Assembly (NCBI GenBank): GCA_002269645.1
Contig: NIVC01000695.1
Location: 409,522-473,521, forward strand
DNA length: 64,000 bases
Direction: 5' to 3'
Source of the DNA: Macrostomum lignano
Lineage: Eukaryota
The position numbers and the translations under genes were made by a program. Position 1 is the first letter of the stretch, and each line of letters begins with the position of its first letter. Below, piece by piece: positions 1 to 64,000 of this stretch. The notes below the pieces were generated by a model. The model had not been told where the DNA came from, ran no database searches, and worked only from the letters and a program-made list of their open reading frames with translations.

Positions 1-2072
1 AGGTGCTGCAGCCAACATTATTGAGGATTCATAAATCGACTTCATGACTATTTTGAAGGTGGCTCTTCAAGCCTTCTTCAAGTACGCGGTTCAGGCGCTC
101 CACTCCGGAATTCTTGAGGGTGGTAGAACGGAGTCTGACGATGATGGATGCCATACGCCTTTAGGAAGTCGTTGAACTCCTGGGAGATGAACTGGGGTCC
201 TCCATCGGTGGTGATTACGCGCGGAATGCCCCAGCGACAAAACAGCGCTATGAGACTCTTGATGATAGTCGCAGACGTCGCCGAAGAGAGGCAGATCAGT
301 TCGGGCCACTTTGAATGCAGGTCGTGCACACCGAGGATGAAGCGGCAGTTCTGTGGTGCACCCTCATGCAGCTCTCCGAACAAGTCGATCTGCAGCTCTG
401 TCCACGGCTCCTTCGGCCACTTGATCGGGGTCAGCACTGTCTGGTGCGGCTTGAAGCTCTTCTCACTGATGATGCACGCAGAGCAGCTGCTGACGAACCT
501 CTCGATGTCGCCGTCCATTTTGAGCCACCACTCGGTGTCTCGGCAGTGATGCTTGGTTCTGCTGACTCCCTTGTGACCTTGATGCGCTAAGTCGAGCACT
601 CGCTGACGCAGTTCTTCCGGTATAACGGCGCGAGCTCCCATGGCCAAGCACCTGCCGTTGCTCCAGACAGTCAGATCGTTCCTTACACTCCAGTAAGGCA
701 GCAGGCGCTCGTCGAGCTTTTTCTTGTCTGGCCAACCGGAAACTGTGAACTCTGCGACTCGTGCCAGGAGCTCTTCCTTTGAAGTTGCTTCCGCCATTTC
801 GTCCTCGGTGACCACGGTCAGCGTCCGTCTCGGCCAGGAGCACTCTCTGGACTTCCAGATCGTCAGTTGCATCGCCTTCCGCCGGCTCGGCCGTGACCTA
901 GCAGCGCACGGTGTTCTTGGCATCCGGGACGTACTTGACGGTGAAGGAGTAATTTAACAAACGATCGTTCGTTCGTTAACCAGCGATCCAGTCTGAGTGG
1001 CCTGTGTCCGCATCCAGATGCTGACAGCAGCGTGGTGAGAGCCTGGTGGTCGATGTGGAGCTCAAACAGTCGGCCGTAGAGGAAGAAGTTCCAGCGCTCG
1101 CAGGCGAAAATGCAGGCTAGGGCTTCCCTCTCGCTTGCGGAGTAGCGGCGCTCCGTAGCACTCAGCGACCGGCTCGCAAAGGCAACCGGGCGCCATTGAC
1201 CATCGGAGTCTTGCTGGAGAAGCATCGCACCGAGAGCTGATGCTGAGCTGTCGCAGTTGACGATGATTGGCTGATCTGGGTCGAAAAACTTGAGGCAAGG
1301 TGGCTTGCACACTCCTGTCTTCAGCTGCTCAAAAGCCTGCTGGCACTCGCTCGTCCACTTCCACGGCTCGTCCTTCCTCAGCAGTTTCATGAGGGGCTCT
1401 GCCGTACTGGGGAGGTTAAAATGAAGTTTCCGAAGTACTTTACGACGCCTAGAAACGCAGCCACTTCCTTGGTGCTCGTTGGCGGCTGTACCTTCTCGAT
1501 AGCTTCGACATGTGACTGCAACGGGCGGACTCCAAGCGCTCAGCTCATAGCCTAGGAAGTTGATCTTTTCCTGACGCCAGGTGCACTTGGCCGTATTGAT
1601 GGTCACGTTGTGCGTCATAAAAGCTTGCAGCACCTTGTTACAGGCGCTTGTCGTGTTCTTCTCTTGATGCCGCGTGCACTACGATGTCATCAATAAAGTG
1701 CACTGCGCCTTTGATACCACTGAGGATCTTTGCCATCACCTTCTGGAGCGCAGCCGGTGCAGTACTCAGGCCGAAGCACACCCTCCGATTCCGATATAGG
1801 CCTCACTCCGTCACGAACGTCGTCAGATTTCTGCAGTACTCGGCCAACTCCAGTTGCAGGTAAGACGAATTCAGGTCCAACTTGGAGAAGCATCGTGACC
1901 CGGCAAACTCGGCGGAGAGCTATTCAAAGGTCGGAAGTGGGTATCTGTCCGGTATGATGCTCTTATTTGGGCGTCTCAGGTCGTTGTAGATCCGGATCGA
2001 GCCATTCGCCTTTGGCACCACAACTAGGTTTGACACCCAATCTGACGCGTCGACCTCCTTAATGATACCTTG
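1..2072 (-). mobile_element. Degenerate Ty3/Gypsy LTR-retrotransposon pol fragment (RT, RNase H, integrase)
   Basis: Minus-strand translation gives RT motifs (GIIKEVDASDWVSNLVVVPK, PDRYPLP, HFIDDIVV). RNase H follows (CDSSASALGAML, RPVAFASRSLSATERRYSASEREALAC, DHQAL), then the integrase HHCC finger (HQGH...CSAC) and D,D35E core (QIDLFG, TTDGGPQF, GVERLNR after a frameshift). The RT-RH-IN order is Gypsy-type. Several stops and frameshifts; no gag or LTR at the 2072 end. Confidence 0.93.
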
Positions 2073-9466: not shown

Positions 9467-10064
9467 AGATTTTGTATTTCTACGAGCGTAGCTCCAGCGC
9501 GAAAAGGATCCTTCAGTATGCTTCACTCATGTCGCCTTGTTGCCTAGTTGGGGGGGGGGGGCAGTTGAGCTATACATCTTTCTTTGCGTTATGGATGTAT
9601 TTGCATCGATATATATAGCAAGTAGCAAGCAAGTAAGCTTTTTGTGCCGCGCTGGGCTGCTCTGCCCTAGCACGCTCATTTTTTCTCCCATTGCCTTTAT
9701 TCATCCCTATTTTTAATCACCGTGTTTAATTAACTACTGTGGAATTGAGTAAATCAAAATAAATTCTGTTTGCCACAGGGGCCCTCCTTCGCCCTTGCCG
9801 CCTCTTCGCCTTCCTTTCTTGGCGTCGTTTGCTAAAGATCGAAAATTTTAATGCCAGAAGTCACGAGAGTCGGCTTTGAGCCGCTTTTAAGCATTTGCAA
9901 AACACTTGGCAAACTAGATGCATTAAATGTATTGCGTATTGTATAATTTTGCCTCAATTAATAGATATTTATTTTCAGTTTCAACTATTATACACTTCCA
10001 GCTTTTATTAAAATATTTATTATTATCAAAAAATAATAAAAGCTGGCTGATTGGCTGAAGTATG

Positions 10065-10531
10065 TATCCAGAAGAGTTCGAGTATCCAGAAGAGTTCGAG
10101 TATCCAGAAGAGTTCGAGTATCCAGAAGAGTTCGAGTATCCAGAAGAGTTCGAGTACCCAGAAGAGTTCGAGTATCCAGAAGAGTTCGAGTACCCAGAAG
10201 AGTTCGAGTATCCAGAAGAGTTCGAGTATCCAGAAGAGTTCGAGTATCCAGAAGAGTTCGAGTATCCAGAAGAGTTCGAGTATCCAGAAGAGTTCGAGTA
10301 TCCAGAAGAGTTCGAGTATCCAGAAGAGTTCGAGTATCCAGAAGAGTTCGAGTATCCAGAAGAGTTCGAGTATCCAGAAGAGTTCGAGTATCCAGAAGAG
10401 TTCGAGTATCCAGAAGAGTTCGAGTATCCAGAAGAGTTCGAGTATCCAGAAGAGTTCGAGTACCCAGAAGAGTTCGAGTATCCAGAAGAGTTCGAGTATC
10501 CAGACGAGTTCGAGTATCCAGACGAGTTCGA
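10065..10531 (+). repeat. 18-bp VNTR (TATCCAGAAGAGTTCGAG) x26, probably coding
   Basis: Direct repeat preceded by an in-frame ATG and ending in GA|GTAAGT. Unit variants are TAT/TAC and GAA/GAC. Confidence 0.95.
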
Positions 10532-10671
10532 GTAAGTGTTCACAGAAGCTGTTCATTTCAAGTCACTAATTGAATCATGATATCACCATTAACTGGTTAA
10601 AATCTCGGATATAAAATACTTCTATATATTTATATACTTATCACACACACCTTGCAACTCTGACCTCCTGG

Positions 10672-23600: not shown

Positions 23601-24326
23601 GTAAAGTACTCATTAAAGTAGCTCATAGTTACAATTATATTGTCTTCTCCAATTTAATGTTTAACTAAAACATTTTGTAATGTCGCTTTCAGAAGTTTGA
23701 GACTTCACAAACTCAAAACTTAATTTAACAAAGCAGTTAAAGCAGTTTTATCCTACTTGTAGTAGTTCAGGCCTGCCAATTTTTCACAGGTCAAAATGCA
23801 TTAACACGGTTCAATGATTTTTTTATTTATCTAGTCTTGTTAATCACTACCTTACAATGTGAGAGTCATAAAAAAGCGCTTTTGACTTCACTGGTAATAT
23901 CTTCACGCAATAAAGCTTGCTTTTTTTTATTAATTTTACTTCTTCAAATTCAAGTAGAAGTCAAGTACAAATTCACAAAACATAATCCTCCAGTACTGAC
24001 AATTATTGCAAGTACATACGATCGTACTTTGTTTCTTTGCAAATATACACGGTTTAACAATCTAATCAGTCTTCTCTAGACACTAAAGTTATTTTAAGAA
24101 ATTAATTTGGTCACGAGTTTAACTTTAGCTCAAAGTTAAGTTGGCATCTATAATTAATCTTAAAGTTCGTTTGAAACACCAATGCGACACACAGACCAAG
24201 TAAGTCTACAGATCTACGTACAGGTCTACAGATTTATTAATACTAATTGTATGTAATTAGAGATCACTAGAAGCTACCGTTACGATAAAACGGCAACTTA
24301 TAATAGTCCTTAATGATATGGTACTC

Positions 24327-24780
24327 TCCGGTCTGACTCCGGTCTGACTCCGATCTGACTCTGGTCTGACTCCGGTCTGACTCCGATCTGAATCCGATCT
24401 GACTCCGATCTGACTCCGGTCTGACTCCGATCTGAATCCGATCTGACTCCGATCTGACTCCGGTCTGACTCCGATCTGACTCCGGTCTGACTCCGGTCTG
24501 ACTCCGATCTGAATCCGATCTGACTCCGATCTGACTCCGGTCTGACTCCGATCTGACTCCGGTCTGACTCCGATCTGACTCCGGTCTGACTCCGGTCTGA
24601 CTCCGGTCTGACTCCGATCTGACTCCGGTCTGACTCCGGTCTGACTCCGGTCTGACTCCGGTCTGACTCCGGTCTGACTCCGGTCTGACTCCGGTCTGAC
24701 TCCGGTCTGACTCCGGTCTGACTCCGGTCTGACTCCGGTCTGAATCCGATCTGAATCCCATCTGAATCCGATCTGAATCC
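24327..24780. repeat. 11-bp minisatellite (G[G/A]TCTGACTCC)n, ~41 copies
   Basis: Direct tandem repeats. Confidence 0.95.
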
Positions 24781-26166
24781 AGTTTCCTTACCTTTTTCAA
24801 TTTACTTCAAGGATTATTAGTTGTGCAGATCTAACCTAGTTCCTCCTGCCTAATATATTCGCATTTAATTGTTTAAACTGCATGTAATACTAATAAGTAT
24901 AAAGTTCCGAGTGCTTAGGTAGAGAATTTTCTAATAAGTCACTCGTGCAACCATAGTGAGGCAAAAAATAAAGAAAACAATTTTTTTGACAAATAAAAAT
25001 CAGTTTTGGAAACTTAAAGCATAAAAGTACATACCATTGCTAACAATGCATTTGTAAACTCATTGTCATTCACAAATAATGATAGGTGCGAAAATTTCTA
25101 TACTGATTAATTTACAGAAGAGTGCAGCTTGTTGTACTCCAATCACCATTTTAGCTATAGCAGCACCCTATCAAAAGATTTTCTTAAAGCGCTCTATACA
25201 CTTAAATGGCAGACAAAATCTAGTTTAAATGAATTGGAAAGCGGTGGCAGTTAGACTATAATAAGTCGAGCAATTTAAACAAATCAGATAGCAAAATAGC
25301 AGCGACGGGCATGCATGTACGAGTATATAAAGGAGTTCAACGTTGCGTTGTAAAAAAGATGGCAAAATTATTGTTTGTACCAATGACGAAAGATGCAGCA
25401 ATATTTAGTCACTGCAAAAAGCACATTTCCATATGGAACTTCGAGCAGAGAATAAATACACGTACGACAAATCAATGATTCGTACGAGATACTTGCTGTC
25501 ATAATAGACTGAGAGCTGAGATTTCATTTTACAGAATTTTGTTAGTTTAAGCTAAAAAATTCGTTTCCAGTGAATCGGGAATCCTAGAAATTTACTGGTA
25601 ATCGTCAACAGATACTACTAATAACTCAGGTAGCTCGCGGTGCCACATCTCAACAAACGCATTTTAGGGGATGATAAAATCTTTCCTTTCAACTTGTCTA
25701 CAGAGTTATCCATTACACATTGCCTCAAAATATTGTTTCTCCTAAACTCAGAAATATTTGACTGTAGGATGTAAAGGTAATTTAAATTTCACAAAAACAG
25801 CAGAAAGTACATTAAACAGCTGAGCCACTACATTTAGATATTGTCGTCAGCAAGGAATGAGAACACTTTAAAGTAGAACATGTACGTTCTCAAGCATATA
25901 TTATCATACTACTGATCTAAAAAGCAACTTAAGAAATGCACAATTCTCAATCAATAGAATTACATCAAGAAATCACTGACATCAGTATCACATCAAGATT
26001 CAATCAAAGTACAACAAACATGTACAATTACATATGTATGTAGATATGTCAATGAAGATTTTAAGTACTTTTTATGTCAATTATTAAATACGAAAACTTT
26101 TTAAAGGCATTTGCGAGATTCGAACAGACAGAAAGCCTAGAAAACCCACAACCAGTACAGGGACTG

Positions 26167-49604
<23,438 letters not shown>

Positions 49605-50560: not shown

Positions 50561-53500
50561 TTACTCTTTGTGGATTCCTGCAGTTTTTGCTATCTCAGCA
50601 TTCAATTTGGACTCGCTTCTGATCCCAGTTTGCTTCAGAAGTTCCGGGATGCTAGCCGCATTTAGTTGCTTCATCAGACTTTTAATGCTTCTGATGTTTA
50701 GCTGTGCCATCAGATCAGAGACACTGCGAATATTAAGTTCAGACATCAGACTTTTGACACTTTTCAATCCAAGCGTGTGCAGAAGATCACTTAGTTTTGA
50801 GCTGCCCGTCTCAACAATCAGACTGGAGAGATTTGAAATATGAAACTGCTTCATCAGAGACGTAACATTGCAGATACCAGTCTGTTCCATGAAAGCCTTT
50901 AAAGTTGGAAGACCCACTTTACGAACGATTTGCCGTAGGTTCTTAGCGTCGAGTTGCTTCATTAGTCCTTGAACATCCGAAATTCCCAGCTGACTCATTA
51001 GACATTGAAGATCAGGAATGCGTACTTGTTTCATCAAGCTCTTAAGGTTCTGAAGTCCGACCTCTCGTAATAGTTGGTGCAGACTCTTTGACCCCAGCTG
51101 GTCCATCAGCTTTGGAACGTCGGTAATGTTAAACTTGGTCATCAACTCTTTAAGATCGTCAAATCCAGCTTCCTTGATTAGAGCGCCCACTGTTCGTACA
51201 CCGCAACGCTTCAGCAGTTGACGTAGGTTCTTTGCGTCGAGTTGATTCATTAGTCCTTGAACATCCGAAATTCCCAGCTGACTCATTAGACCTTGAAGAT
51301 CAGGAATGCGTACTTGTTTCATCAAGCTCTTAAGGTTCTGAAGTCCGACCTCTCGTAATAGTTGGTGCAGACTCTTTGACCCCAGCTGGTCCATCAGCTT
51401 TGGAACGTCGGTAATGTTAAACTTGGTCATCAACTCTTTAAGATCGTCAAAGCCAGCTTCCTTGATTAGAGCGCCCACTGTTCGTACACCGCAACGCTTC
51501 AGCAGTTGACGTAGGTTCTTAGCGTCGAGTTGCTTCATTAGTCCTTGAACATCCGAAATTCCCAGCTGACTCATTAGACCTTGAAGATCAGGAATGCGTA
51601 CTTGTTTCATCAAGCTCTTAAGGTTCTGAAGTCCGACCTCTCGTAATAGTTGGTGCAGACTCTTTGACCCCAGCTGGTCCATCAGCTTTGGAACGTCGGT
51701 AATGTTAAACTTGGTCATCAACTCTTTAAGATCGTCAAAGCCAGCTTCCTTGATTAGAGTGCCCACTGTTCGCAAACCACAACGCTTCAGAAGCTGACGT
51801 AGGTTCTTGGCGTCGAGTTGATTTATGAGGTCTGTTAGAGATTTGATTTGTAGTTCGTGTCTCAGGCCACGCAAACTTTTTATTCCGAGTTGCTTCAAGA
51901 ATGCCATTAGGTTTTTGGAGCCCGTTTTTTCCATCAGTTCTGACAGCTTCTTTACATTTAACTCTTTCATTAGCCCATATACACCCTCAATTCTTGCCTG
52001 AGTTAATAAATCTGGAATGCTTGTCACACTTAGCGTTTGAACTAGCTTATTGAGGTTTGGCGAATTCAGCTTTTTCATCAAAGTGGCCAGGTTTTGAGCC
52101 TTAAGGCGTCGCATTAGGTCACGGAAGTTCAGCTGCTTTAGCTTCTGCTGAAGTGCAGAAAAGCTGGACACCTTCAGAGCATTCATCAGTGTTTCGATAT
52201 TTCGGCCATTGGCGAGGTGCCTCAGTCCGGGGATTTTTTTCAGGGCATGTATACTCTTCAGAGGTTCCAAATATTTTGACAACTTGTCAGTTATTCTGTT
52301 GACTTTCTCGACGACTGGAATTCTGGATATCGCTTTTTTAATTAACCTATCGGCAGCTTTGATTTTCTTTAGTCCCGAAATTGATTTGATAACTTTGCGA
52401 ACTTTTTTCTCCATTCTTCTGAGCTTCCGGAGTCCCGGAATCCTGTCCAACACTCCCGGGCCGTACTTGTCAACGAGTTTTCTGAGAACAGGGTTCCTGT
52501 TTACAATGCCTGTGATCTTGGCGTGTACACCTTTGATTTTTGCAACAGCAGGCAGTGCGTTGAGCTTTGCAAAAACTTTCGTCTTTAACGCTGTAAGCTT
52601 TTTTACAATCGACAGGCTCTTCAAATTTGCAGCTATTTTAGACTTTATTAAAAGAATCTTCTTTACTATCGGTACAGCCTTCAATTTTGTGATGATGAAC
52701 GTCTTGGCTGCCACAAGCGGCTTTACAAACAGCGTCTTTGCAGCGGCAGCGGCGACAGCTTTGAATTTAACGACAGCAGCTGCGACAGCTTTGAATTTAA
52801 CAAAAGCGGCAGCGGCGGCTTTGACTAGGAATGGCACAAAGAAAATTTTTTTGGATGCCTTCGTGGTTTCTGAAATTATTATTAATAATTAACTCAATTA
52901 GTTGGGGTGAATAAATTTAGACAATCAGACAATATAGCTGGTATCTCGTAAATGTATTACGTGTTATTCGATAACAACCAATATGAAAGCTAATGAGCGC
53001 TACGGTATCAAAAATGTACTATTGAGCGCATACATGCGCAACCCCCCTGATTTACACTGACCATGCGATTTACTTTTTGACCAAAAAATGTGACTTACCT
53101 GTGAAAGAAACCATACAGCAACATTAACGCAAATTTTGGGTAAACGGCAGGAGTAACTATCACTGTTCTATAAGGGCTAAATGCCTCGTCATCTAATTAG
53201 TACTACGTCTGTATTCTTTGGGGTGGGCATTTTTGCGACCCCTGGTCCACCACAATTTACGGTGACTAGATCGGCCAGGTCGGCCAGCAGTTGCGCATGT
53301 ATGATTGAGCGTGAGCGTGTGTCTGAGTGCATGTCTGGCGCTTTGCATCAGGGTGACTACCAGCCCACTTGCAAACTTCTACTTGTCTTATGCCTTATTG
53401 ATGTTTACTCACATCCAATTCTTGAGGTCCAACGTAGGCGGGCAGATTGGCAGTCTGGAGAGCATCCTTAGACTCTCTGGCCTCCTCGACATCCAAATCT

Positions 53501-53562
53501 GTTGCTTGACAGGCGACTACAGCGAGCAGCAGTGCAAGGCCGCCGATAGAGATTAAGCGCAT
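50561..53562 (-). CDS. Secreted precursor: signal peptide, acidic propiece, ~770-aa Lys/Leu/Ala-rich amphipathic body with 12-aa repeats
   Basis: Exon 1 at 53413-53562: MRLISIGGLALLLAVVACQATDLDVEEARESKDAL...GPQELD|GTGAGT. Large exon 50561-52869 follows acceptor AATTTCAG. It contains three near-identical 288-bp (96-aa = 8x12-aa) repeats. The phase between the two exons is unresolved (0 vs 1). Confidence 0.75.
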
Positions 53563-55369: not shown

Positions 55370-56350
55370 ATGCGCTTAAGGAGTCAAATATTTTTCGGAG
55401 TCTGTCTAGCTGTGTTGCTAGTGACTCAGGTCTGCTGCGACAGCGAGAAAAGTCATGATGACGATTTCGATGAGCAGCTGGCAGAGACGGCCAAAAGCTT
55501 GGTCGATAGCGAAATTGGTACCGCTGAAGATCCGTTTGCAGATTTCGATGTGAGTCTAAACCCTTGGAGTTTGTTGGCTCAAGAAGGCGGGTAGATGAGA
55601 GAGGAAAAGAGAGGGAATGAGGGAAGGAGAAGAAAGATGAGATAAGATATGAGGGAGAGAGGGATGAGAGAAGGTGTTCACGGCTGTTCACTCCAAGGAC
55701 TGGGGGTCGCCACACACACCCTCAATTACCCAGCTAATGCTGGCACCCATTTTACAGCTGGGTGAACTGAAGCAATGCAGAGTTAACTTTCTTGTTCAGT
55801 GACACAAATTGTTCCAGTGGGATTCGGGAATCGAACCCCCGACCTTCAAGTCTTTGATCACTAGGCTACAACCCTAGCTGCGACACGAGAGGAGAGGAGA
55901 GAAGAGGATAGCAAAGAGGAGAGATAAGATGAGAGAGGAGAGAAGGGATAAGATAGGAGAGAGGAGAGAAGAGAGCTGAGAAGAGACACAAGCCTCAATC
56001 GAACGGGCTTGCTATTGTAAAGTTTCAAAGGACCCGAGGACGGGATAGAGAGGCTTCATGGGCAGCATGTGGCCTTCGGGTCGGAGCTGTTAATCTTGTT
56101 CAATAGATTTCCGGACCAAAGCTAAAGTCTGAAGTTGAAAAAAAGTTCTAACTTCTGCGAGCATCTCCCATGTTTTTTGTCCTATGGTCCGACAAGTGAC
56201 CGATTACATTCGGTCAGCGTCTTTACCTCGGGCTCTGTTTAGGAACTTAAATTGACGTTCCCTTCTATAGCATCAGTACAATACAAGCTATCTACTAAAC
56301 TGCAGGATGCGGAGAGGCTGACAAAGAAGTGGCAAGAAGAGGACGAATAA
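55370..56350 (+). CDS. Secreted precursor 2: signal peptide plus acidic propiece; downstream exon uncertain
   Basis: Exon 1 at 55370-55549: MRLRSQIFFGVCLAVLLVTQVCC-DSEKSHDDDFDEQLAETAKSLVDSE...FD|GTGAGT. Candidate exon 2 at 56306-56350 after CTACTAAACTGCAG. Confidence 0.6.
55681..55875 (-). mobile_element. tRNA-derived SINE, second copy, in the intron of the 55370 gene
   Basis: Reverse complement matches 22893-23102 (GGTTCGATTC box B, CATTGCTTCAGTTCA[T/C]CCAGCTGTAAAATGG, CCCCAGTCCTTGGA). Confidence 0.8.
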
Positions 56351-56599
56351 AGGACGGTTCGGCAAAATGAATAACTTTTCAATATTAAAGTTGTTTGCTG
56401 CTTCCAAATCAGTGAAACATCGGCGCGAATTTTTGCTAAATAACATCTCCTGATAAATTTGTAATTATTATAAATATATAGTCTCGATAGGTCAGTTTTC
56501 TTCTAACTAAAGGCTGTTGGATTGTCGATTTTTTATTTTAAATTTCTGCTACATGTAGCCATCTACCTGTAAATTTGGGTATCTCTATGTTACTCTTTC

Positions 56600-56990
56600 C
56601 CTCAGATTTCTCAGATCTCCCTCAGATCTCCCTCAGATCTCCCTCAGATCTCCCCGAGATATCCCTCACATTCCCTCAGATTCCCTCAGATCTCCCTCAG
56701 ATCTCCCTCAGATCTCCCTCAGATCTTCCTCAGATCTCCCTCAGATCTCCCTCAGATCTCCCTCAGATCTCCCTCAGATCTCCCTCAGATCTCCCTCAGA
56801 TCTCCCTCAGATCTCCCTCAGATCTCCCTCAGATCTCCTTCAGAACTCTAAAATCTCCCTCAGATCTCCTTCAGATCTCCCTCAGATATCCCTCAGATCT
56901 CCCTCAGATCTCCCTCAGATCTCCCTCAGATCTCCCTCAGATCTCCCTCAGATCTCCTTCAGAACTCTAAAATCTCCCTCAGATCTCCCA
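56600..56990. repeat. 11-bp minisatellite (CTCCCTCAGAT)n
   Basis: Direct tandem repeats. Confidence 0.95.
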
Positions 56991-57686
56991 AAGAGGACCA
57001 TCTTCCCCGGCCTTCCCAGTGACATTTGACTGTCAGTGACACTTGACTATCAGTGATATTTGACTGTACAGAGTTCTAAATCTGTGCCTGCAGGGGGTCG
57101 AGACCTCAAATGCGACACTAATAAACAGCGCTAAAATTTCACTCAAATAAATAAAAAAATCACTGAAAAAAACTTAGGAGACAATATATAGGAGCTGATC
57201 AGAGAATATAGCGCTCGATATTCTCTGGAGCTGATTGATGGATGTCTGATTGCAAATGAATCTTTTTCTACCATAGATTGCTCAAATTAGCGTCTCAAAG
57301 CCATCCCCCTTAGCTTCAACTGGCTACCATAGTGACCATGTTCGTTTACTCTAAAAGCATCTGCGCAACACGGATCTTCTAGCAAACTTTAAACCCGGAT
57401 TTGAACAAGTTATTAGTTTATTTTGCTTGCAAATTTTCCAACCGGAGACAACTGAAATAATCAACTCATGGATGCTTTTCATCACAATATTTTCTTGTCT
57501 AAAATGTCAGTGTTACTATTGTCTGTGTTTTTGCTGCACAGTTTTTATTCTCTGAATATTCATTTTACATTGTGCCGAAGGGCGTAGACTATCAATGGCC
57601 TGTATGAGCTAGTTTAGCTAGCAGGTTAAACGATCTATTAGGGGGAGGGGCGAAAGAGACTGAGATATAAGAGCAGGGAGACACAC

Positions 57687-57706
57687 ACAGAGAGAAAGAG
57701 AGAGAC

Positions 57707-57777
<71 letters not shown>
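57687..57777. repeat. (AG)n microsatellite
   Basis: Direct observation. Confidence 0.95.
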
Positions 57778-57780
<3 letters not shown>

Positions 57781-58103
57781 GATGGAGTGATATTATTCAC
57801 ATATACTAAATATTGAATTTACTACCTATACGCTACTATCACGATATGATATCCTCTGCGTAATACATGTTGCAAAGTTATAGCACTTCTATCGTGAATA
57901 AGGTTATGAGAAGTCTTATTTAAAAAAAGTAATAGCTCTTATATAACTACCCATGGAGTAGCTAATATAGGAGAATAGTTTATTTTTTGTATACGAGTGT
58001 ACTATCAATTTTTCAATCAACTATGTTTTTATGGAAAACGGGTCTGATCAACTGGTTAAAAGTATATCACAGTTTTGTAAACGAAATTTTTTTTTGTTTT
58101 TTC

Positions 58104-58759
58104 TTATTCAAACTCGCCAAAATCGTTGCCATCCTCAATCTGTGGAATCGGGCCGGGCGGCGGTGGCGGCCTCTTCGGCGTCGTAGCTGGCGGCGGCGAC
58201 TCAGTAGTAACGCGCTGCGTTGTTGGCGGACGGGCTGTTGTCAAAGACGCTCGAGTATTTTTAGGTGTCGGTAGAACCGCAGTCTTCTTTGGTCTTCCGT
58301 TCCGGCTCCATCCTCCCCAGCGTCGTCCCCAACGGCCGCGACCTCGACCCCAGATCGGCCGACGTCGATTCCACCCATATCGTTTAAAAACCCGCTTGAT
58401 TTGTTTTGCTGCACGCCGAATCCTTCTGAATCGGGACTGTTTCTCCGCTTGATCGATTTCCTGTTTGTTTGTTTTTTGGTATTGTTATTTTATGTAGACA
58501 TGAACTAGCGAAATTCAATACAACGAGTCTGTCGCTAAAAACTTACGTCATCTTCTCCATCTTCGTAGTCGTTAGGAAGGCTTTCCTCAGCTGAATCTTG
58601 ACTTTTAGTGGCTTCTTCTTCACTGTCAATATCGTCGATGGCTTCAGCTAGTTGATGGTATTCACGCTCTGCAGGGTCATCGTGGTAGCGGACGGCGCTA
58701 CCTGTTGCCAGTGGCAGCAGCGCGGCGGCAAGGAGCGCTGCTATGGCAACAAATCGCAT
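58104..58759 (-). CDS. Secreted prepropeptide (189 aa) with Arg/Trp/Gly-rich cationic core; antimicrobial-peptide-like
   Basis: Exon 1 at 58547-58759 (signal MRFVAIAALLAAALLPLATG plus acidic propiece, phase-0 donor GTAAGT). Exon 2 at 58104-58460 (acceptor CAAACAG): EIDQAEKQSRFRRIRRAAKQIKRVFKRYGWNRRRPIWGRGRGRWGRRWGGWSRNGRPKKTAVLPTP...PPPPGPIPQIEDGNDFGEFE*. A 5'-UTR acceptor (CTTCTTTACAG) lies just upstream of the ATG. Confidence 0.85.
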
Positions 58760-59354
58760 ATTCTTGTATTTTCTACCGGCTGTAAAGAAGAGAAAATATC
58801 AGAAATTAACTCGGCTCCGAGATACAGCTTAAGCGAAAAATTATTATAAAAAGATTTCTTTTCGAATTCCCGGATTTTCATACTCAATGAAGTCCTGGAT
58901 ATGCAGAGCCAACAGTTTGTTTTGAATTGGCTAGTCACTATACTAATAGCATCATAAAGTTTTTTTTTCTGAAAAATTTCAAGCAAAACGAACGAGGCAG
59001 AAGATGCATCTACAGTAAAGCTCAAGTACCACCTGTGTCCATTCCAATGTTTTACTCTTTATATAGACATGGCCTTAATAGTCGTAGCCGCGACTAAATA
59101 AAACAAGTACAAGTATTTTTATTCTCCATGCAGTAGAAATAAATGAGGATTAAGGCTGGCGCATTTTGCTCTTAAGTCTTTCTCGTTTTCAAAGTTCTTA
59201 GGACCGCGTATGCGAAAATATTGTCATTTCAGCTTTTTTATTTCAGTCGGACGATCGAAAATAATACGACACCAGAAACCAAGAGATTTAAAGAGTTAAG
59301 TTAGATTTTGACTTAAAGACTTTTACGACGCTTTTCTCGCTGAAGGCAGCTAGG

Positions 59355-61248
59355 TTAGAATGTGCACAGAGTCTTGACAGATCGGCAGCAACCACTCTGA
59401 CACTGTCCGCAGTAGGTCTTAGCGTTTCCAATGTCGTTATTGTCTCGCAGGTACTTGATATAGTCCTTCCATCCTGTGCACGTGTCGCCCCAGGAGTCGC
59501 CCCAGAAGCAGCTCTCGTCGGCTTCGGGAGCGGAGGTGTCGCTAGCGCACTGGCCGTCCCAGTTACAGCTCTTCTTGTTGCCGCAGGGTGTGCCAACGGG
59601 GGCCCGGAGACCGCCGCCAGTCACTCCGCTTGAAGAGCCGGCGGTCGGAGTGCAGAAAATCTTGGCGCAGATCAGTGCCGGATTAGAAGAGACGTCATCA
59701 GTGAGGAAGAACTTGCCCGGACTGGATGGATAGGCGAGGCGACACACCTGGTCCAGGGTCATGCGACCGCCTTCGCGAGTCGTTGTAGCCATTGAGGAGT
59801 CTGGAGAGCCTTGACGCGACTTCAAGCACTCGGCCTTGCCTAATAAGTTGTAAATTTTATAACTCTTTGTAATTTTTCAAAAATTTTGCAAAAAGCCTGT
59901 ATGTTAGATCAAGGACCACTATGAACACTAGGAACAAGTCTAGTAGTCCTTGTGTTAGATTTGTGCTGCGTACCTGTAGCCAGATAGTTTTTCATGAAGG
60001 TCACTGTGCAGGGAGAAAACCTATACGAGTTGGCGACGTCGCTAAGGGAGTATGACCCCGCAGAAGGCGACATTAGGAACTTGTAAGCCACTTTGCATGC
60101 CGGTTGGTCATTGTCGTGATCGGATCCCATGTTGTGGGCCAACTCGTGCGACGCTGTGCCCCAGCTCTGCAAGCCCTGGTCCTCATTGATGCTAACTCGC
60201 GTGTCCTGACAGGCGCCTCCAACGTAAGCCATGCCGCACACTGCGGTGTTGCCGCCACTCTGGATATCCGTGCGCGTAAACGCCATCACGTGATCGGCAG
60301 TCTTGCCAACGGCGTAAGACTTGATGTAGCCGAGGATTGCACTGGCGTCGGTTGCTGTTCAGTAGCGGATTGAGGAAGTGATAATTTAATAGATTTAGCT
60401 ATTTCAGAATTATTAGCAAAATTTATCGTACTTACCGTCAGAGGAACCAGCTGGAGGCATCCATTGCGAATCAGCCTGCGTCTTTGCCACGGTGAGGCCG
60501 GTGCACTTGACACTCATAGACGGGTTTCCGACGTTTCTGAACGCTGTATCGATTCCGTTCAAAATGTGCGTGTAATAGTAGTGAAGCTCTGTCATAGCTG
60601 CAGCATCAGTGCTGTAAATTGTCTTAAACGCGTTCCACACAGTGTGGTCCAGAAGCAAAAGGAGCTCCACCTCAAGATCTGTAGCAGCTTGATTGGACTG
60701 ACGCTTCTTGCGGCTCATTACTTGCATGACCTTCGACTTGTCAATCTGCGACTCAATACCGTCTGGCTGGGCAATGTTGCGTGTGACTTGATGCTCTGAA
60801 GCACCGCTTGGCTTGACGAAATAGGATGTACCTTCGTGCATCACGTGACCGCTGAAGCGTTTCTTTCCCTTCTCGTGTCGAACACTGATGACAGACTTGC
60901 TCTCGATGTCCCTGTAGTGAGCGTGACTCGCGTGGTGAGCTTGGCGAGCTGAAAAAGTCCTGGAGACTCCATTCTCTCTCACGGTCATTGGCACACTCTC
61001 AAAGGCGTCAGTCTTTTCCAATGGAATGCGGACCTTCTTGTTCGTGCTGGGCAGCTGTATTTCGATCTCCATAGACGAAGGATGCGGTCCATCGTTGCTG
61101 GATCGAGTCACAGACACTGAAGCCTGGGCCGCAGCAACAGCGAGCAGAAATATGACTGCAAAATTGATAAGATAATTACACTGAAAACTTGCTTCGATGT
61201 GTGTTGTGACACATGAATGATAAATTACTACTTACCAATGCGCAGCAT
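59355..61248 (-). CDS. Secreted ADAMTS-like reprolysin (M12B) zinc metalloprotease, 4 exons, ~532 aa
   Basis: Exons: 61236-61248, 60436-61155, 59974-60354, 59355-59839, all joined by phase-1 GT-AG introns. Signal MLRIVIFLLAVAAAQA, prodomain ending in furin site RKKR, HELAHNMGSDHD zinc motif, Met-turn FLMSP, and a Cys-rich C-terminal domain. No TSP1 repeats seen. Confidence 0.92.
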
Positions 61249-63118: not shown

Positions 63119-63936
63119 ATGAAAATGCTGAAAATAGGTGAGTTAACCACAGAACTTACAGAAGCTCTGTGGAGTCAACTGCATATGCTTCAGGAAATTA
63201 CGTATGTTTACGAGTCGTACGTGCTCAATATTTTAGCTATATTTCTGGCCGTCTCTGCGGCAGCCCAGGCCTCGGTGTCCGTGACGCAATCCAGCGGTGA
63301 CGGACCTCACCCGTCCTCCATGGAGATCGAGCTCCAGCTGCCCGACACCGACAAGAAAGTCCGCATCCCGCTGACCAAGACTGCTCCGTTGGATGGCGCT
63401 GTGGTCACTGTGACGGACGGTGGAGTCTCCAGGACGTTCTCTGGCCGACAAGCCCAACACGGAGATCAAGCTCACTACAGAAATGTTGATAGCAAGTCTG
63501 TGATCAGCGTTCGACACGAGAACGGCACAAAGCGCATCAGCGGTCACGTGACGCACAAAGGCACCTCGTATGTCATCCAGCCGATCGGCGACTCTGGGCA
63601 CCGCGTCTCCAAAACCAAAAAAACTGCGGATGGGACGCAGCCCGAGCAGTTGCTGAGTCGCAAGAAACGCCGAGTGAACCGAGAGGCTACCGAATACGAA
63701 GTCGAGATTCACATCCTCATTGATCACACCGTTTGGAAGGCTTTCAAGACAATTTTCGGTACGGATGACAAAGCCCTGACTGAGCTGCACTTCTACTATT
63801 CTCACATTGTGATTGGCATGGACACGGTCTTCAGGAAGCATCGGCAGTCCGTCAATCAGTGTCAGGTGCATTGGGTTAACAGTAGCCAAGACTGAAGCCG
63901 ATGCAAAGTGGATGCCTCCGGATAGCTCGGCTGATG
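63119..63936 (+). pseudogene. Inverted paralog of the M12B protease (exons 1-2 in window), with +1 frameshift
   Basis: Exon 1 at 63119-63137 and exon 2 at 63237-63936, with the same intron positions as the 61248 gene. Shared motifs DGPHPSSMEIE and SRKKR. Frame shifts near 63835 and homology resumes in another frame (SIGSPSISVRCIGLTVAKTEADAKWMPP). May be a sequencing error; the gene continues beyond the window. Confidence 0.75.
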
Positions 63937-64000
63937 GTACGCGCTTAGTGTGCTTTTGTCTTACTTGACATACCGAATTAGCTGCAGGGGGTTCTGGGCG

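Follow-up and report, generated by a model that had tools for sequence, protein, structure and literature searches.

The terminal 64 kb of contig NIVC01000695.1 from the free-living flatworm Macrostomum lignano (assembly GCA_002269645.1), the stretch analyzed here and called the window, carry on the minus strand at 58759-58104 a candidate two-exon gene for a small secreted pro-protein. It is best read as an unannotated, lineage-restricted gene at the margin between gene birth and death, intact in the window copy, disabled in the other haplotype class, dispensable and turning over; we rate this reading as about as likely as not. The predicted precursor joins a signal peptide to an acidic propiece, a strongly cationic core and a tail rich in proline and threonine. 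The original prediction had taken this layout for that of an antimicrobial peptide (AMP) precursor hidden from the list of open reading frames (ORFs).

Gene model

The proposed gene comprises the following features, listed in the direction of transcription (nt, nucleotides; UTR, untranslated region).

59058..59065, minus strand: TATA-like box TATATAAA, found by pattern scan, about 300 nt upstream of the ATG
58780..58805, minus strand: candidate acceptor for spliced leader (SL) trans-splicing or for a 5'-UTR intron, TTTCTGATATTTTCTCTTCTTTACAG, with pyrimidine-rich TTTACAG 20 nt before the ATG
58759-58547, minus strand: exon 1, 213 nt, beginning at the ATG
58546-58461, minus strand: intron, 86 nt, phase 0, GTAAGT...AACAG
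58460-58104, minus strand: exon 2, 357 nt including the stop codon TAA (58104..58106)
57979..57984, minus strand: poly(A) signal AATAAA, found by pattern scan, 120 nt after the stop codon

Taken together, the candidate looks like a real two-exon gene for a secreted precursor, with the splicing itself predicted. The frame of the second exon is open for 126 codons (58484-58107) and contains no ATG, GTG or TTG before 58244, which is why the exon is missing from the ORF list, as the original prediction had noted. The in-frame junction proposed there, 58547/58460, also holds: both sides are in phase 0, and splicing would yield a product of 189 amino acids. In its motifs and size class the 86-nt intron is like the three introns (81-134 nt) of a metalloprotease gene directly upstream and like the splice consensus of the species, GT[G/A]AG / CAG (PMC8629364).

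Base composition changes in steps at the proposed boundaries. GC content is 0.35 in the 5' region, 0.53 in exon 1, 0.31 in the intron, 0.58 in exon 2 and 0.26 in the 3' UTR; for comparison, the exons of the protease gene have values of 0.52-0.59 and its introns 0.30-0.32. A 3-base periodicity is significant in exon 1 (chi-square 46.5, p<0.0005) and in exon 2 (19.3, p=0.0025), and none was detected in three neighboring non-coding controls (p 0.23-0.75). The candidate is also one of only 3 among the 123 ATG-initiated ORFs of at least 50 amino acids in the window that have a signal-peptide-like start.

Five ATGs (59042, 59009, 58955, 58952 and 58881) intervene between the TATA-like box and the start codon, and the 5' part of a transcript starting from this box would therefore need to be removed. 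The candidate acceptor matches [T/C]TNCAG, the motif found at SL trans-splice acceptors of M. lignano (PMC8629364), and is kept with one substitution in the two other genomic copies that contain the candidate (see below). If this acceptor is used, all five upstream ATGs would be removed, since the proposed start codon is the first ATG after TTTACAG.

Predicted product

The 189-residue product divides into blocks of contrasting composition.

58700..58759, minus strand: signal peptide MRFVAIAALLAAALLPLATG, codons 1-20, with basic n-region MR, A at -3 and G at -1
58547..58699, minus strand: acidic propiece, part encoded by exon 1, codons 21-71
58437..58460, minus strand: end of the acidic propiece, codons 72-79 (EIDQAEKQ)
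58284..58436, minus strand: cationic core of 51 amino acids, codons 80-130, net charge +22
58377..58430, minus strand: amphipathic alpha-helix FRRIRRAAKQIKRVFKRY, codons 82-99
58107..58283, minus strand: Pro/Thr-rich tail of 59 amino acids, codons 131-189, ending in IEDGNDFGEFE

By heuristic criteria for n-, h- and c-regions, the signal peptide has an h-region of 15 residues with a mean Kyte-Doolittle hydropathy of 2.65. The propiece (residues 21/22-79) contains 23 Asp or Glu and has a net charge of -19, whereas the core contains 17 Arg, 5 Lys, 5 Trp and 8 Gly and no acidic residue; the charges and residue counts originally given for both blocks proved exact. This segregation of charge is extreme, as the range of the cumulative charge (28) exceeds that of all 20,000 shuffled sequences (mean 9.4, maximum 22). 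The helix at the start of the core has a hydrophobic moment of 0.99 compared with 0.34 +/- 0.17 in shuffles, a value that only 3 of 10,000 shuffles reach (p ~3e-4). Exactly at the boundary between acidic and basic blocks lie two overlapping furin-type sites, RFRR (81-84) and RIRR (84-87), which match RX[KR]R and at which cleavage is predicted. Five further dibasic or tribasic sites (KR, KR, RRR, RR and KK, at 93, 97, 103-105, 117 and 129) are found inside the core.

A single-sequence AlphaFold model consists mostly of low-confidence coil, with a mean predicted local distance difference test score (pLDDT) of 60.6. Its only moderately confident element is a helix at residues 73-98 (pLDDT ~80); a low-confidence helix is placed at residues 29-52 of the propiece, and the tail is coil.

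The tail contains 15 Pro and 11 Thr among its 59 residues, and 4 of the last 10 residues are acidic. Its Pro/Thr richness and acidic end are as originally described, and its composition would suit O-glycosylation. The term mucin-like applies in this sense only: secreted mucins have long tandem repeats rich in Pro, Thr and Ser, whereas this tail is short and without tandem repeats. At the DNA level no tandem repeat was found in either the tail or the Arg/Gly/Trp stretch, and the idea that the core is a decayed tandem repeat was rejected on this ground.

All five Trp residues of the core adjoin Gly (GW, WG, WG, WG, GW). Such GW/WG dipeptides are the pattern of Argonaute-binding motifs, a role that is unlikely in an Arg-rich, secreted context.

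An origin of exon 1 as a transmembrane or cytoplasmic-tail exon of the upstream ADAM-like protease was considered and rejected, because the protease is complete without it (532 amino acids, matching a public protein, with its own stop codon and AATAAA). The hydrophobic segment is assigned to a signal peptide and not to a transmembrane helix of the protease because its flanking charges fit a signal peptide.

Copies in the genome and selection

The protease gene upstream of the candidate is present on four contigs (g1-g4), and these were used to compare copies of the locus. The locus reached through protease cluster member g4, L003, is 100% identical to window positions 64000-53355; it is the window itself, which is thereby placed at the end of contig NIVC01000695.1. 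The other three loci are L001, L002 and L004. The features that matter for the comparison are as follows.

61248-61236, 61155-60436, 60354-59974 and 59839-59355, minus strand: exons of the M12B (reprolysin-type, ADAM-like) metalloprotease gene, upstream of the candidate on the same strand
58742..58744, minus strand: codon 6 (ATA), site of a 1-nt deletion, AT- in both L001 and L002
58323..58482, minus strand: run of 160 nt identical between haplotype classes, comprising the end of the intron and codons 72-117

The candidate is contained in L001 and L002. L004 is of their haplotype class, but its contig stops 40 nt short of the ATG. A single intron base separates L001 from L002 over the candidate; their divergence from the window amounts to about 4-6% of sites. 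Both are frameshifted at codon 6. No in-frame downstream ATG that could rescue the frame is present in either copy, and a rescue by an ATG supplied with the spliced leader was rejected, as it gives only a 27-residue dead end. Other coding indels are of +3 and +12 nt, the latter adding PWRR inside the core.

When the window is compared with L001, with the frameshift patched, the candidate shows 19 non-synonymous and 5 synonymous changes (proportions of changed sites pN 0.045 and pS 0.036; dN/dS ratio, omega, 1.25). Divergence is 0.047 in the intron, 0.066 in the 5' region and 0.028 in the 3' UTR. In contrast, the protease gene at 59355-61248 (minus strand) has pS 0.043 and pN 0.003 over the same copies, taken through alignment columns, a pN/pS of 0.07, and the substitution patterns of the two genes differ (Fisher p=5e-5 to 2e-4). 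The candidate is thus without detectable overall purifying selection, and its amino-acid-changing sites diverge at the neutral rate. An omega of 0.3 or less is rejected (p=0.002) and one of 0.5 is marginal (p=0.044), whereas 0.6, the expectation for one constrained and one dead lineage, is not rejected (p=0.10).

Neither overall purifying selection between copies nor a frame intact in all of them, the marks of a conserved M. lignano gene, was detected. By comparison, an annotated neighbor of 74 amino acids (gene B) is intact in all three copies. An ORF of 758 amino acids further downstream was also considered as a dN/dS control; it shows only 1 difference in 2274 nt and hence has no power.

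The 160-nt run is the longest stretch of identity in a divergent block of 2.2 kb (59270-57074), with P=0.0024 by permutation, and does not fit simple neutrality. Within it lie the amphipathic helix and, of the Arg/Trp segment, the first half. Its synonymous sites are conserved as well, and the frameshifted copies cannot translate its codons from the ATG; for these reasons gene conversion explains the tract as well as selection on the core does. The copies are mosaic, with breakpoints near 60270 and 57074, which points to recombination or gene conversion between homeologous or allelic copies. Between 62520 and 60270 the window agrees with L001; between 60269 and about 57074 L001 and L002 are the same and the window departs from both; beyond this, to about 54750, the relationships are mixed.

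Relatives and comparable precursors

The 189-residue product matched no Pfam family, and a word-seeded search of 5.8 billion proteins gave no match at E<=10. Likewise, an exhaustive phmmer scan of 1.84 billion representatives gave none at E<=0.001. Among PDB sequences the sole match, to the helix, was a designed coiled coil; it reflects the heptad-like nature of the helix and is no relative. A described structural or nucleic-acid-binding protein, named in the original prediction as the match that would overturn it, was found in none of these searches. The unspliced 74-residue ORF of exon 1 is not on record, a tblastn search within the window yielded no paralogue and only translations of minisatellites, and the peptide, the neighboring gene ID and the contig name do not occur in searchable papers. 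On these searches the candidate is an orphan restricted to its lineage.

Another macrostomid is represented in the collection searched by transcript contigs (SRR28338163-66) for a protease with 71% identity; it is too distant to serve as outgroup because unconstrained sequence would be unrecognizable at that distance. The sequence cluster of the protease itself has no M. lignano RNA-seq member; absence of the candidate from this collection therefore says little about its expression.

The order of signal, anionic propiece and cationic segment is known from dermaseptins, from spider peptides of the latarcin or cupiennin type and from alpha-defensins, as well as from pro-eosinophil major basic protein. 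With the AMP precursors of this class the candidate shares block order, charge balance (-19/+22), a basic boundary site and an amphipathic helical start, and it shows the marks of the class in having a signal peptide (by heuristic), a charge-balancing acidic propiece and a predicted basic boundary site. It has no sequence homology with them and carries an additional Pro/Thr tail, and the likeness is, for lack of homology, an analogy of design. The conserved preproregion that defines the dermaseptin superfamily is absent, EKQSR|F of the candidate departs from the processing quadruplet motif of spider precursors, which calls for Arg at P1 with Glu at P2-P4, and alpha-defensins have cysteines whereas the candidate has none. 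The comparison with cathelicidins drawn in the original prediction stands for the amphipathicity of the helix only: cathelicidins have a cathelin-like prodomain with four cysteines, and the candidate has neither cysteines nor a Pfam cathelicidin match.

Residues 100-124, composed largely of Arg, Trp and Gly, resemble in composition indolicidin, tritrpticin, lactoferricin, synthetic (RW)n peptides and penetratin. The Trp and Arg residues of such peptides engage in cation-pi interactions and seek interfaces; the peptides measure 9-25 residues and are grouped by activity rather than by common descent. In the candidate all Trp are flanked by Gly in a longer Gly/Arg context, and there is no homology.

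The closest parallel among spiralians is with the myticalins and modiocalins, linear AMPs of mussels that are likewise free of Cys, cationic and Arg-rich, with a signal peptide and a charge-balancing anionic region (PMC5577615). Myticalins also resemble the candidate in a convertase site between the blocks (predicted in the candidate), an intron or acceptor directly before the ATG, fast evolution, pseudogenes and presence/absence variation (PMC5577615). They differ in the order of blocks, which is signal, cationic segment, KR site and C-terminal anionic region, compared with signal, anionic, cationic and Pro/Thr tail in the candidate. Myticalins share a conserved family signal peptide (MKG..LLLLT...) and anionic extension, to which the candidate has no similarity in protein searches. 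Their genes have three exons, with a 5'-UTR intron before the ATG and a phase-1 intron in the anionic extension (PMC5577615); the candidate likewise has an acceptor just upstream of its ATG, but its coding sequence is interrupted in phase 0 and within the N-terminal acidic region. Finally, myticalins form a multigene family, whereas the candidate is single. Big defensins, CS-alpha-beta peptides and myticalins are reportedly missing from flatworms, for which no AMP repertoire has been described (PMC10414684).

Secreted orphans of Macrostomum are alike in having a signal peptide, no homologues or domains, a high non-synonymous rate and presence/absence turnover (PMC5977470, PMC8662610, PMC10092323). 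These were defined from expressed transcripts and in situ patterns, whereas the candidate is known here from genome sequence. This class fits its evolutionary behavior at least as well as host defense does.

Proposed processing and competing explanations

The anatomy of the gene and its product suggests the following course of events, all steps of which are deduced from that anatomy. The pre-mRNA would be SL trans-spliced, or would lose a 5'-UTR intron, at TTTACAG 20 nt before the ATG. It might be transcribed jointly with the upstream protease gene: the two are about 600 bp apart, the AATAAA of the protease (59242) lies only about 460 bp upstream of the candidate, and this spacing fits the criterion of less than 1 kb used for operon calling in M. 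lignano (PMC8629364), so that co-transcription is possible. After removal of the 86-nt intron and translation, the signal peptide would direct the product to the endoplasmic reticulum and be cut off after Gly20. In transit the -19 propiece would neutralize the +22 segment electrostatically, until a furin-type convertase cuts at RFRR/RIRR on the boundary between acidic and basic blocks. This would free the cationic amphipathic helix with the Arg/Gly/Trp segment, possibly together with the Pro/Thr tail, and the freed peptide would bind polyanionic surfaces, among them glycans, nucleic acids and membranes of microbial or other origin. The most natural role for such a peptide would be in host defense.

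Several observations weigh against a gene that is still alive in the window copy. The candidate is known here from its DNA alone, and NCBI annotation has no gene at its position in the window, in L001 or in L002, while the same annotation does call the protease and the 74-residue orphan 3 kb away; this lack is weak evidence because the neighboring 758-residue ORF is also uncalled. A codon-usage likelihood trained on neighboring genes did not single out the proposed frame, the composition of which is extreme. If the transcript is SL trans-spliced, the ATG supplied by the spliced leader would open an out-of-frame upstream ORF of 13 codons that overlaps the start codon. The deletion at codon 6 ends the frame in L001 and L002 after 16 codons (MRFLAMQRFLPPSCCH*), and the frame-preserving indels of +3 and +12 nt are not counted as signs of coding constraint because slippage of 3-nt and 12-nt repeats explains them. 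An omega of about 1 together with frameshifted copies fits a dead gene equally well. As to the product, the internal basic sites may, if cut, fragment the core, and an intact 51-residue form is doubtful.

Much of this evidence can be accommodated by a former secreted-protein gene that is decaying in all copies, the window copy merely being still undisabled and giving no product. We consider this the main rival, if on balance rather unlikely. The omega of 1.25, a pN close to pS and to the divergence of intron and flanks, the frameshift in the other haplotype class (to which L004 also belongs) and the lack of annotation in all copies would all be expected from it, as would the lower GC content at third codon positions (GC3, 0.41-0.49 compared with 0.59-0.70 in neighboring genes). 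Codon periodicity and GC steps outlast the death of a gene and do not argue against it. What it leaves less well explained is that a frame of 189 codons has survived in the window copy, along with splice sites, poly(A) signal and a signal peptide close to ideal, despite the 4-6% divergence of the block, and that perfect identity over 160 nt occurs only where the core lies (P=0.0024); the expectation for one constrained and one dead lineage, moreover, is compatible with the data (omega 0.6, p=0.10). A chance ORF in non-coding DNA that was never a gene is very unlikely. The window has roughly three more open stretches of 120 codons or longer that lack an explanation, the antisense frame is also open (123 codons), and the codon-usage result and missing annotation would agree with it. 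The GC steps fall exactly at canonical splice sites, however, the codon periodicity is significant and absent from the flanks, the signal peptide begins at the first ATG after an SL-type acceptor, the junction is in phase, and a poly(A) signal follows at a suitable distance; this conjunction is very improbable by chance.

If the margin-of-birth-and-death gene is expressed, antimicrobial and other gland-secretion functions are specific cases of it. A functional antimicrobial precursor, in which the acidic propiece masks a membrane-active helix and Arg/Trp tail until a convertase releases them, has in its favor the succession of signal, anionic pro-region and cationic core, the near-exact charge balance with furin sites at the boundary, the hydrophobic moment of the helix (0.99) and an Arg/Trp-rich composition as in known Trp-rich AMPs. 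Flatworm AMPs are undescribed, and one large screen would have missed the candidate because it took only annotated proteins of up to 150 amino acids (PMC10414684); high non-synonymous divergence and presence or absence of intact copies are also seen in myticalins (PMC5577615). Against it stand the lack of homology to any AMP family in Pfam, protein searches and PDB, the single gene without a paralogue in the window where a multigene family might be expected, and the disabling of most copies. Non-synonymous sites diverge no faster than synonymous and intron sites, leaving no signal of positive selection, and the internal KR, RR and RRR sites, if cut, would fragment the helix. A real antimicrobial function thus appears unlikely: plausible from the chemistry, it is improbable as a conserved defense function. 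What survives of the AMP-type precursor first proposed is the secreted, charge-balanced architecture; the proposed host-defense role and tethering in mucus are speculative, and the frameshifted copies, the neutral pN and the missing annotation weigh against a maintained defense gene. Somewhat less likely again is the stronger version, in which the copy of the window type is expressed and functional and encodes a taxon-restricted precursor of a linear host-defense peptide, the first to be described in a flatworm, with an acidic propiece masking the helix and Arg/Trp effector, its core held identical by selection, the remainder of the gene turning over and most copies pseudogenized, by analogy a presence/absence variation like that of the mussel myticalins. 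With about the same low probability as an antimicrobial function, the product might be another fast-evolving gland protein (seminal fluid or prostate, adhesive or releasing gland, mucus), its charge blocks serving self-association, coacervation or binding to partner tissue and not the killing of microbes. BLAST finds no match for 31 of 76 prostate-limited transcripts of M. lignano, and classical signal peptides are present in 38 of 65 (PMC5977470); reproduction-related genes in the genus evolve fast with presence/absence turnover (PMC7336406, PMC8662610, PMC10092323). The candidate is also one of three small genes or ORFs clustered within 5 kb, each with a first exon for a signal peptide and an acidic stretch, and a disordered block polyampholyte with a Pro/Thr tail would suit an extracellular matrix or secretion. 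The three first exons are not significantly similar, though, no sequence feature is specific to reproduction or adhesion, and the candidate is not among annotated genes while the published gland candidates came from assembled transcripts. Least probable of all is a neuropeptide or prohormone from which dibasic cleavage and Gly amidation would release YGWNRRRPIW-amide, a W(X6)W-amide like the myoinhibitory peptides (MIP)/allatostatin-B, and GRGRW-amide. The signal peptide, the acidic spacer and the KR/RR sites around Trp-Gly-Arg (FKR|YGWNRRRPIWG|R, ...GRWG|RR) would allow this, RRR before Pro being a poor convertase site. MIP/allatostatin-B precursors, however, are conserved and contain several W(X5-8)W-Gly copies with dibasic flanks, whereas the candidate has one possible unit (YGWNRRRPIWG), no repeated peptide copies, no relatives and no similarity to neuropeptide precursors in Pfam and protein searches; with five Trp in 22 residues such a spacing easily arises by chance, and frameshifts in most copies with an omega of about 1 are unlike conserved neuropeptide genes.

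Neighboring genes and repeats

Two further features lie at a distance from the candidate.

78-1678, minus strand: long terminal repeat (LTR) retrotransposon pol remnant with RNase H, integrase zinc-binding and integrase core domains, in two overlapping frames
26167-26634: last (C-terminal) exon of an Inscuteable homologue, the first coding exon of which lies near 49263-49604

The four exons of the adjacent M12B gene encode a complete secreted protein that is 99% identical to M. lignano BOX15_Mlig018498g1. A second, partial M12B metalloprotease gene at 63119-64000 (plus strand) is in divergent orientation to the one at 59355-61248 (minus strand) and about 60% identical to it. Each of the pair has a signal peptide, a prodomain with an RKKR site, the zinc motif HELAHNMGSDHD and a Cys-rich C-terminus, and the pair is part of a large expansion in M. 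lignano with at least 13 relatives.

Within 5 kb, three genes or ORFs including the candidate follow one design: 53413-53562 (minus strand), 55370-56350 (plus strand) and 58104-58759 (minus strand). In each, exon 1 codes for MR and a signal peptide, continues into a short run rich in acidic residues and has Asp at its end, followed by a phase-0 GT[A/G]AGT donor. These are the only signal-like starts among the 123 ATG-ORFs counted above. Descent of the three first exons from a common ancestor was considered, and pairwise similarity is not significant; they are analogous and not demonstrably paralogous. The second of them is gene B (exon 1 55370-55549, exon 2 56306-56350), the annotated, intact gene of 74 amino acids. 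Within its intron, at about 55810-55890, is a stretch that in reverse complement looks like a tRNA T-arm (…GGAATCGAACCCCCGACC…), which hints at a remnant of a tRNA-derived short interspersed nuclear element; ARAGORN and Rfam identified no tRNA gene there.

The 758-residue ORF mentioned above (50561-52888, minus strand) is an open frame of 775 codons, counted as 758 amino acids from the first listed start. It is rich in Lys and Leu, with repeats of about 96 amino acids (288 nt; ...LMKQLDAKNLRQLLKRCG...), has no convincing Pfam family and no NCBI annotation, and matches its L001 counterpart at 99.96% identity. Possibly it forms a downstream exon of a gene that includes the signal-peptide exon at 53562; the strongest acceptor for such a junction (52870) would break the phase, and the only one that keeps it (52858) is weak.

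Dense minisatellite arrays are found at about 9900-10600, 24260-24800, 31550-39650, 41500-43870, 45840-46600, 48490-49240 and 56540-57030. They are open in several frames on both strands, and most of them appear to lie inside large introns of the Inscuteable homologue. An (AG)44 microsatellite (57689-57776), about 200 nt downstream of the poly(A) signal of the candidate, is the most indel-rich stretch between copies. The pol remnant has a GC content of 0.56 compared with 0.43 for the window and, being split over two overlapping frames, is probably inactive. An Rfam scan of the window gave no match.

Significance

If the candidate is not expressed, it is an ordinary decaying ORF of little importance. 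If it is expressed and active, it would offer a first handle on the antimicrobial peptides of flatworms, a repertoire that cannot be found by homology (PMC10414684), and would show that AMP screens based on annotation miss such genes. Rapid evolution and presence/absence turnover have often been recorded for secreted orphans of Macrostomum, notably for prostate and seminal-fluid candidates (PMC5977470, PMC7336406, PMC8662610, PMC10092323). Whatever its function, the locus is a compact, testable case of a secreted orphan poised between its birth and its death, in a genome that became polyploid recently, with an intact copy beside several frameshifted ones and a strongly constrained neighboring gene as an internal control.

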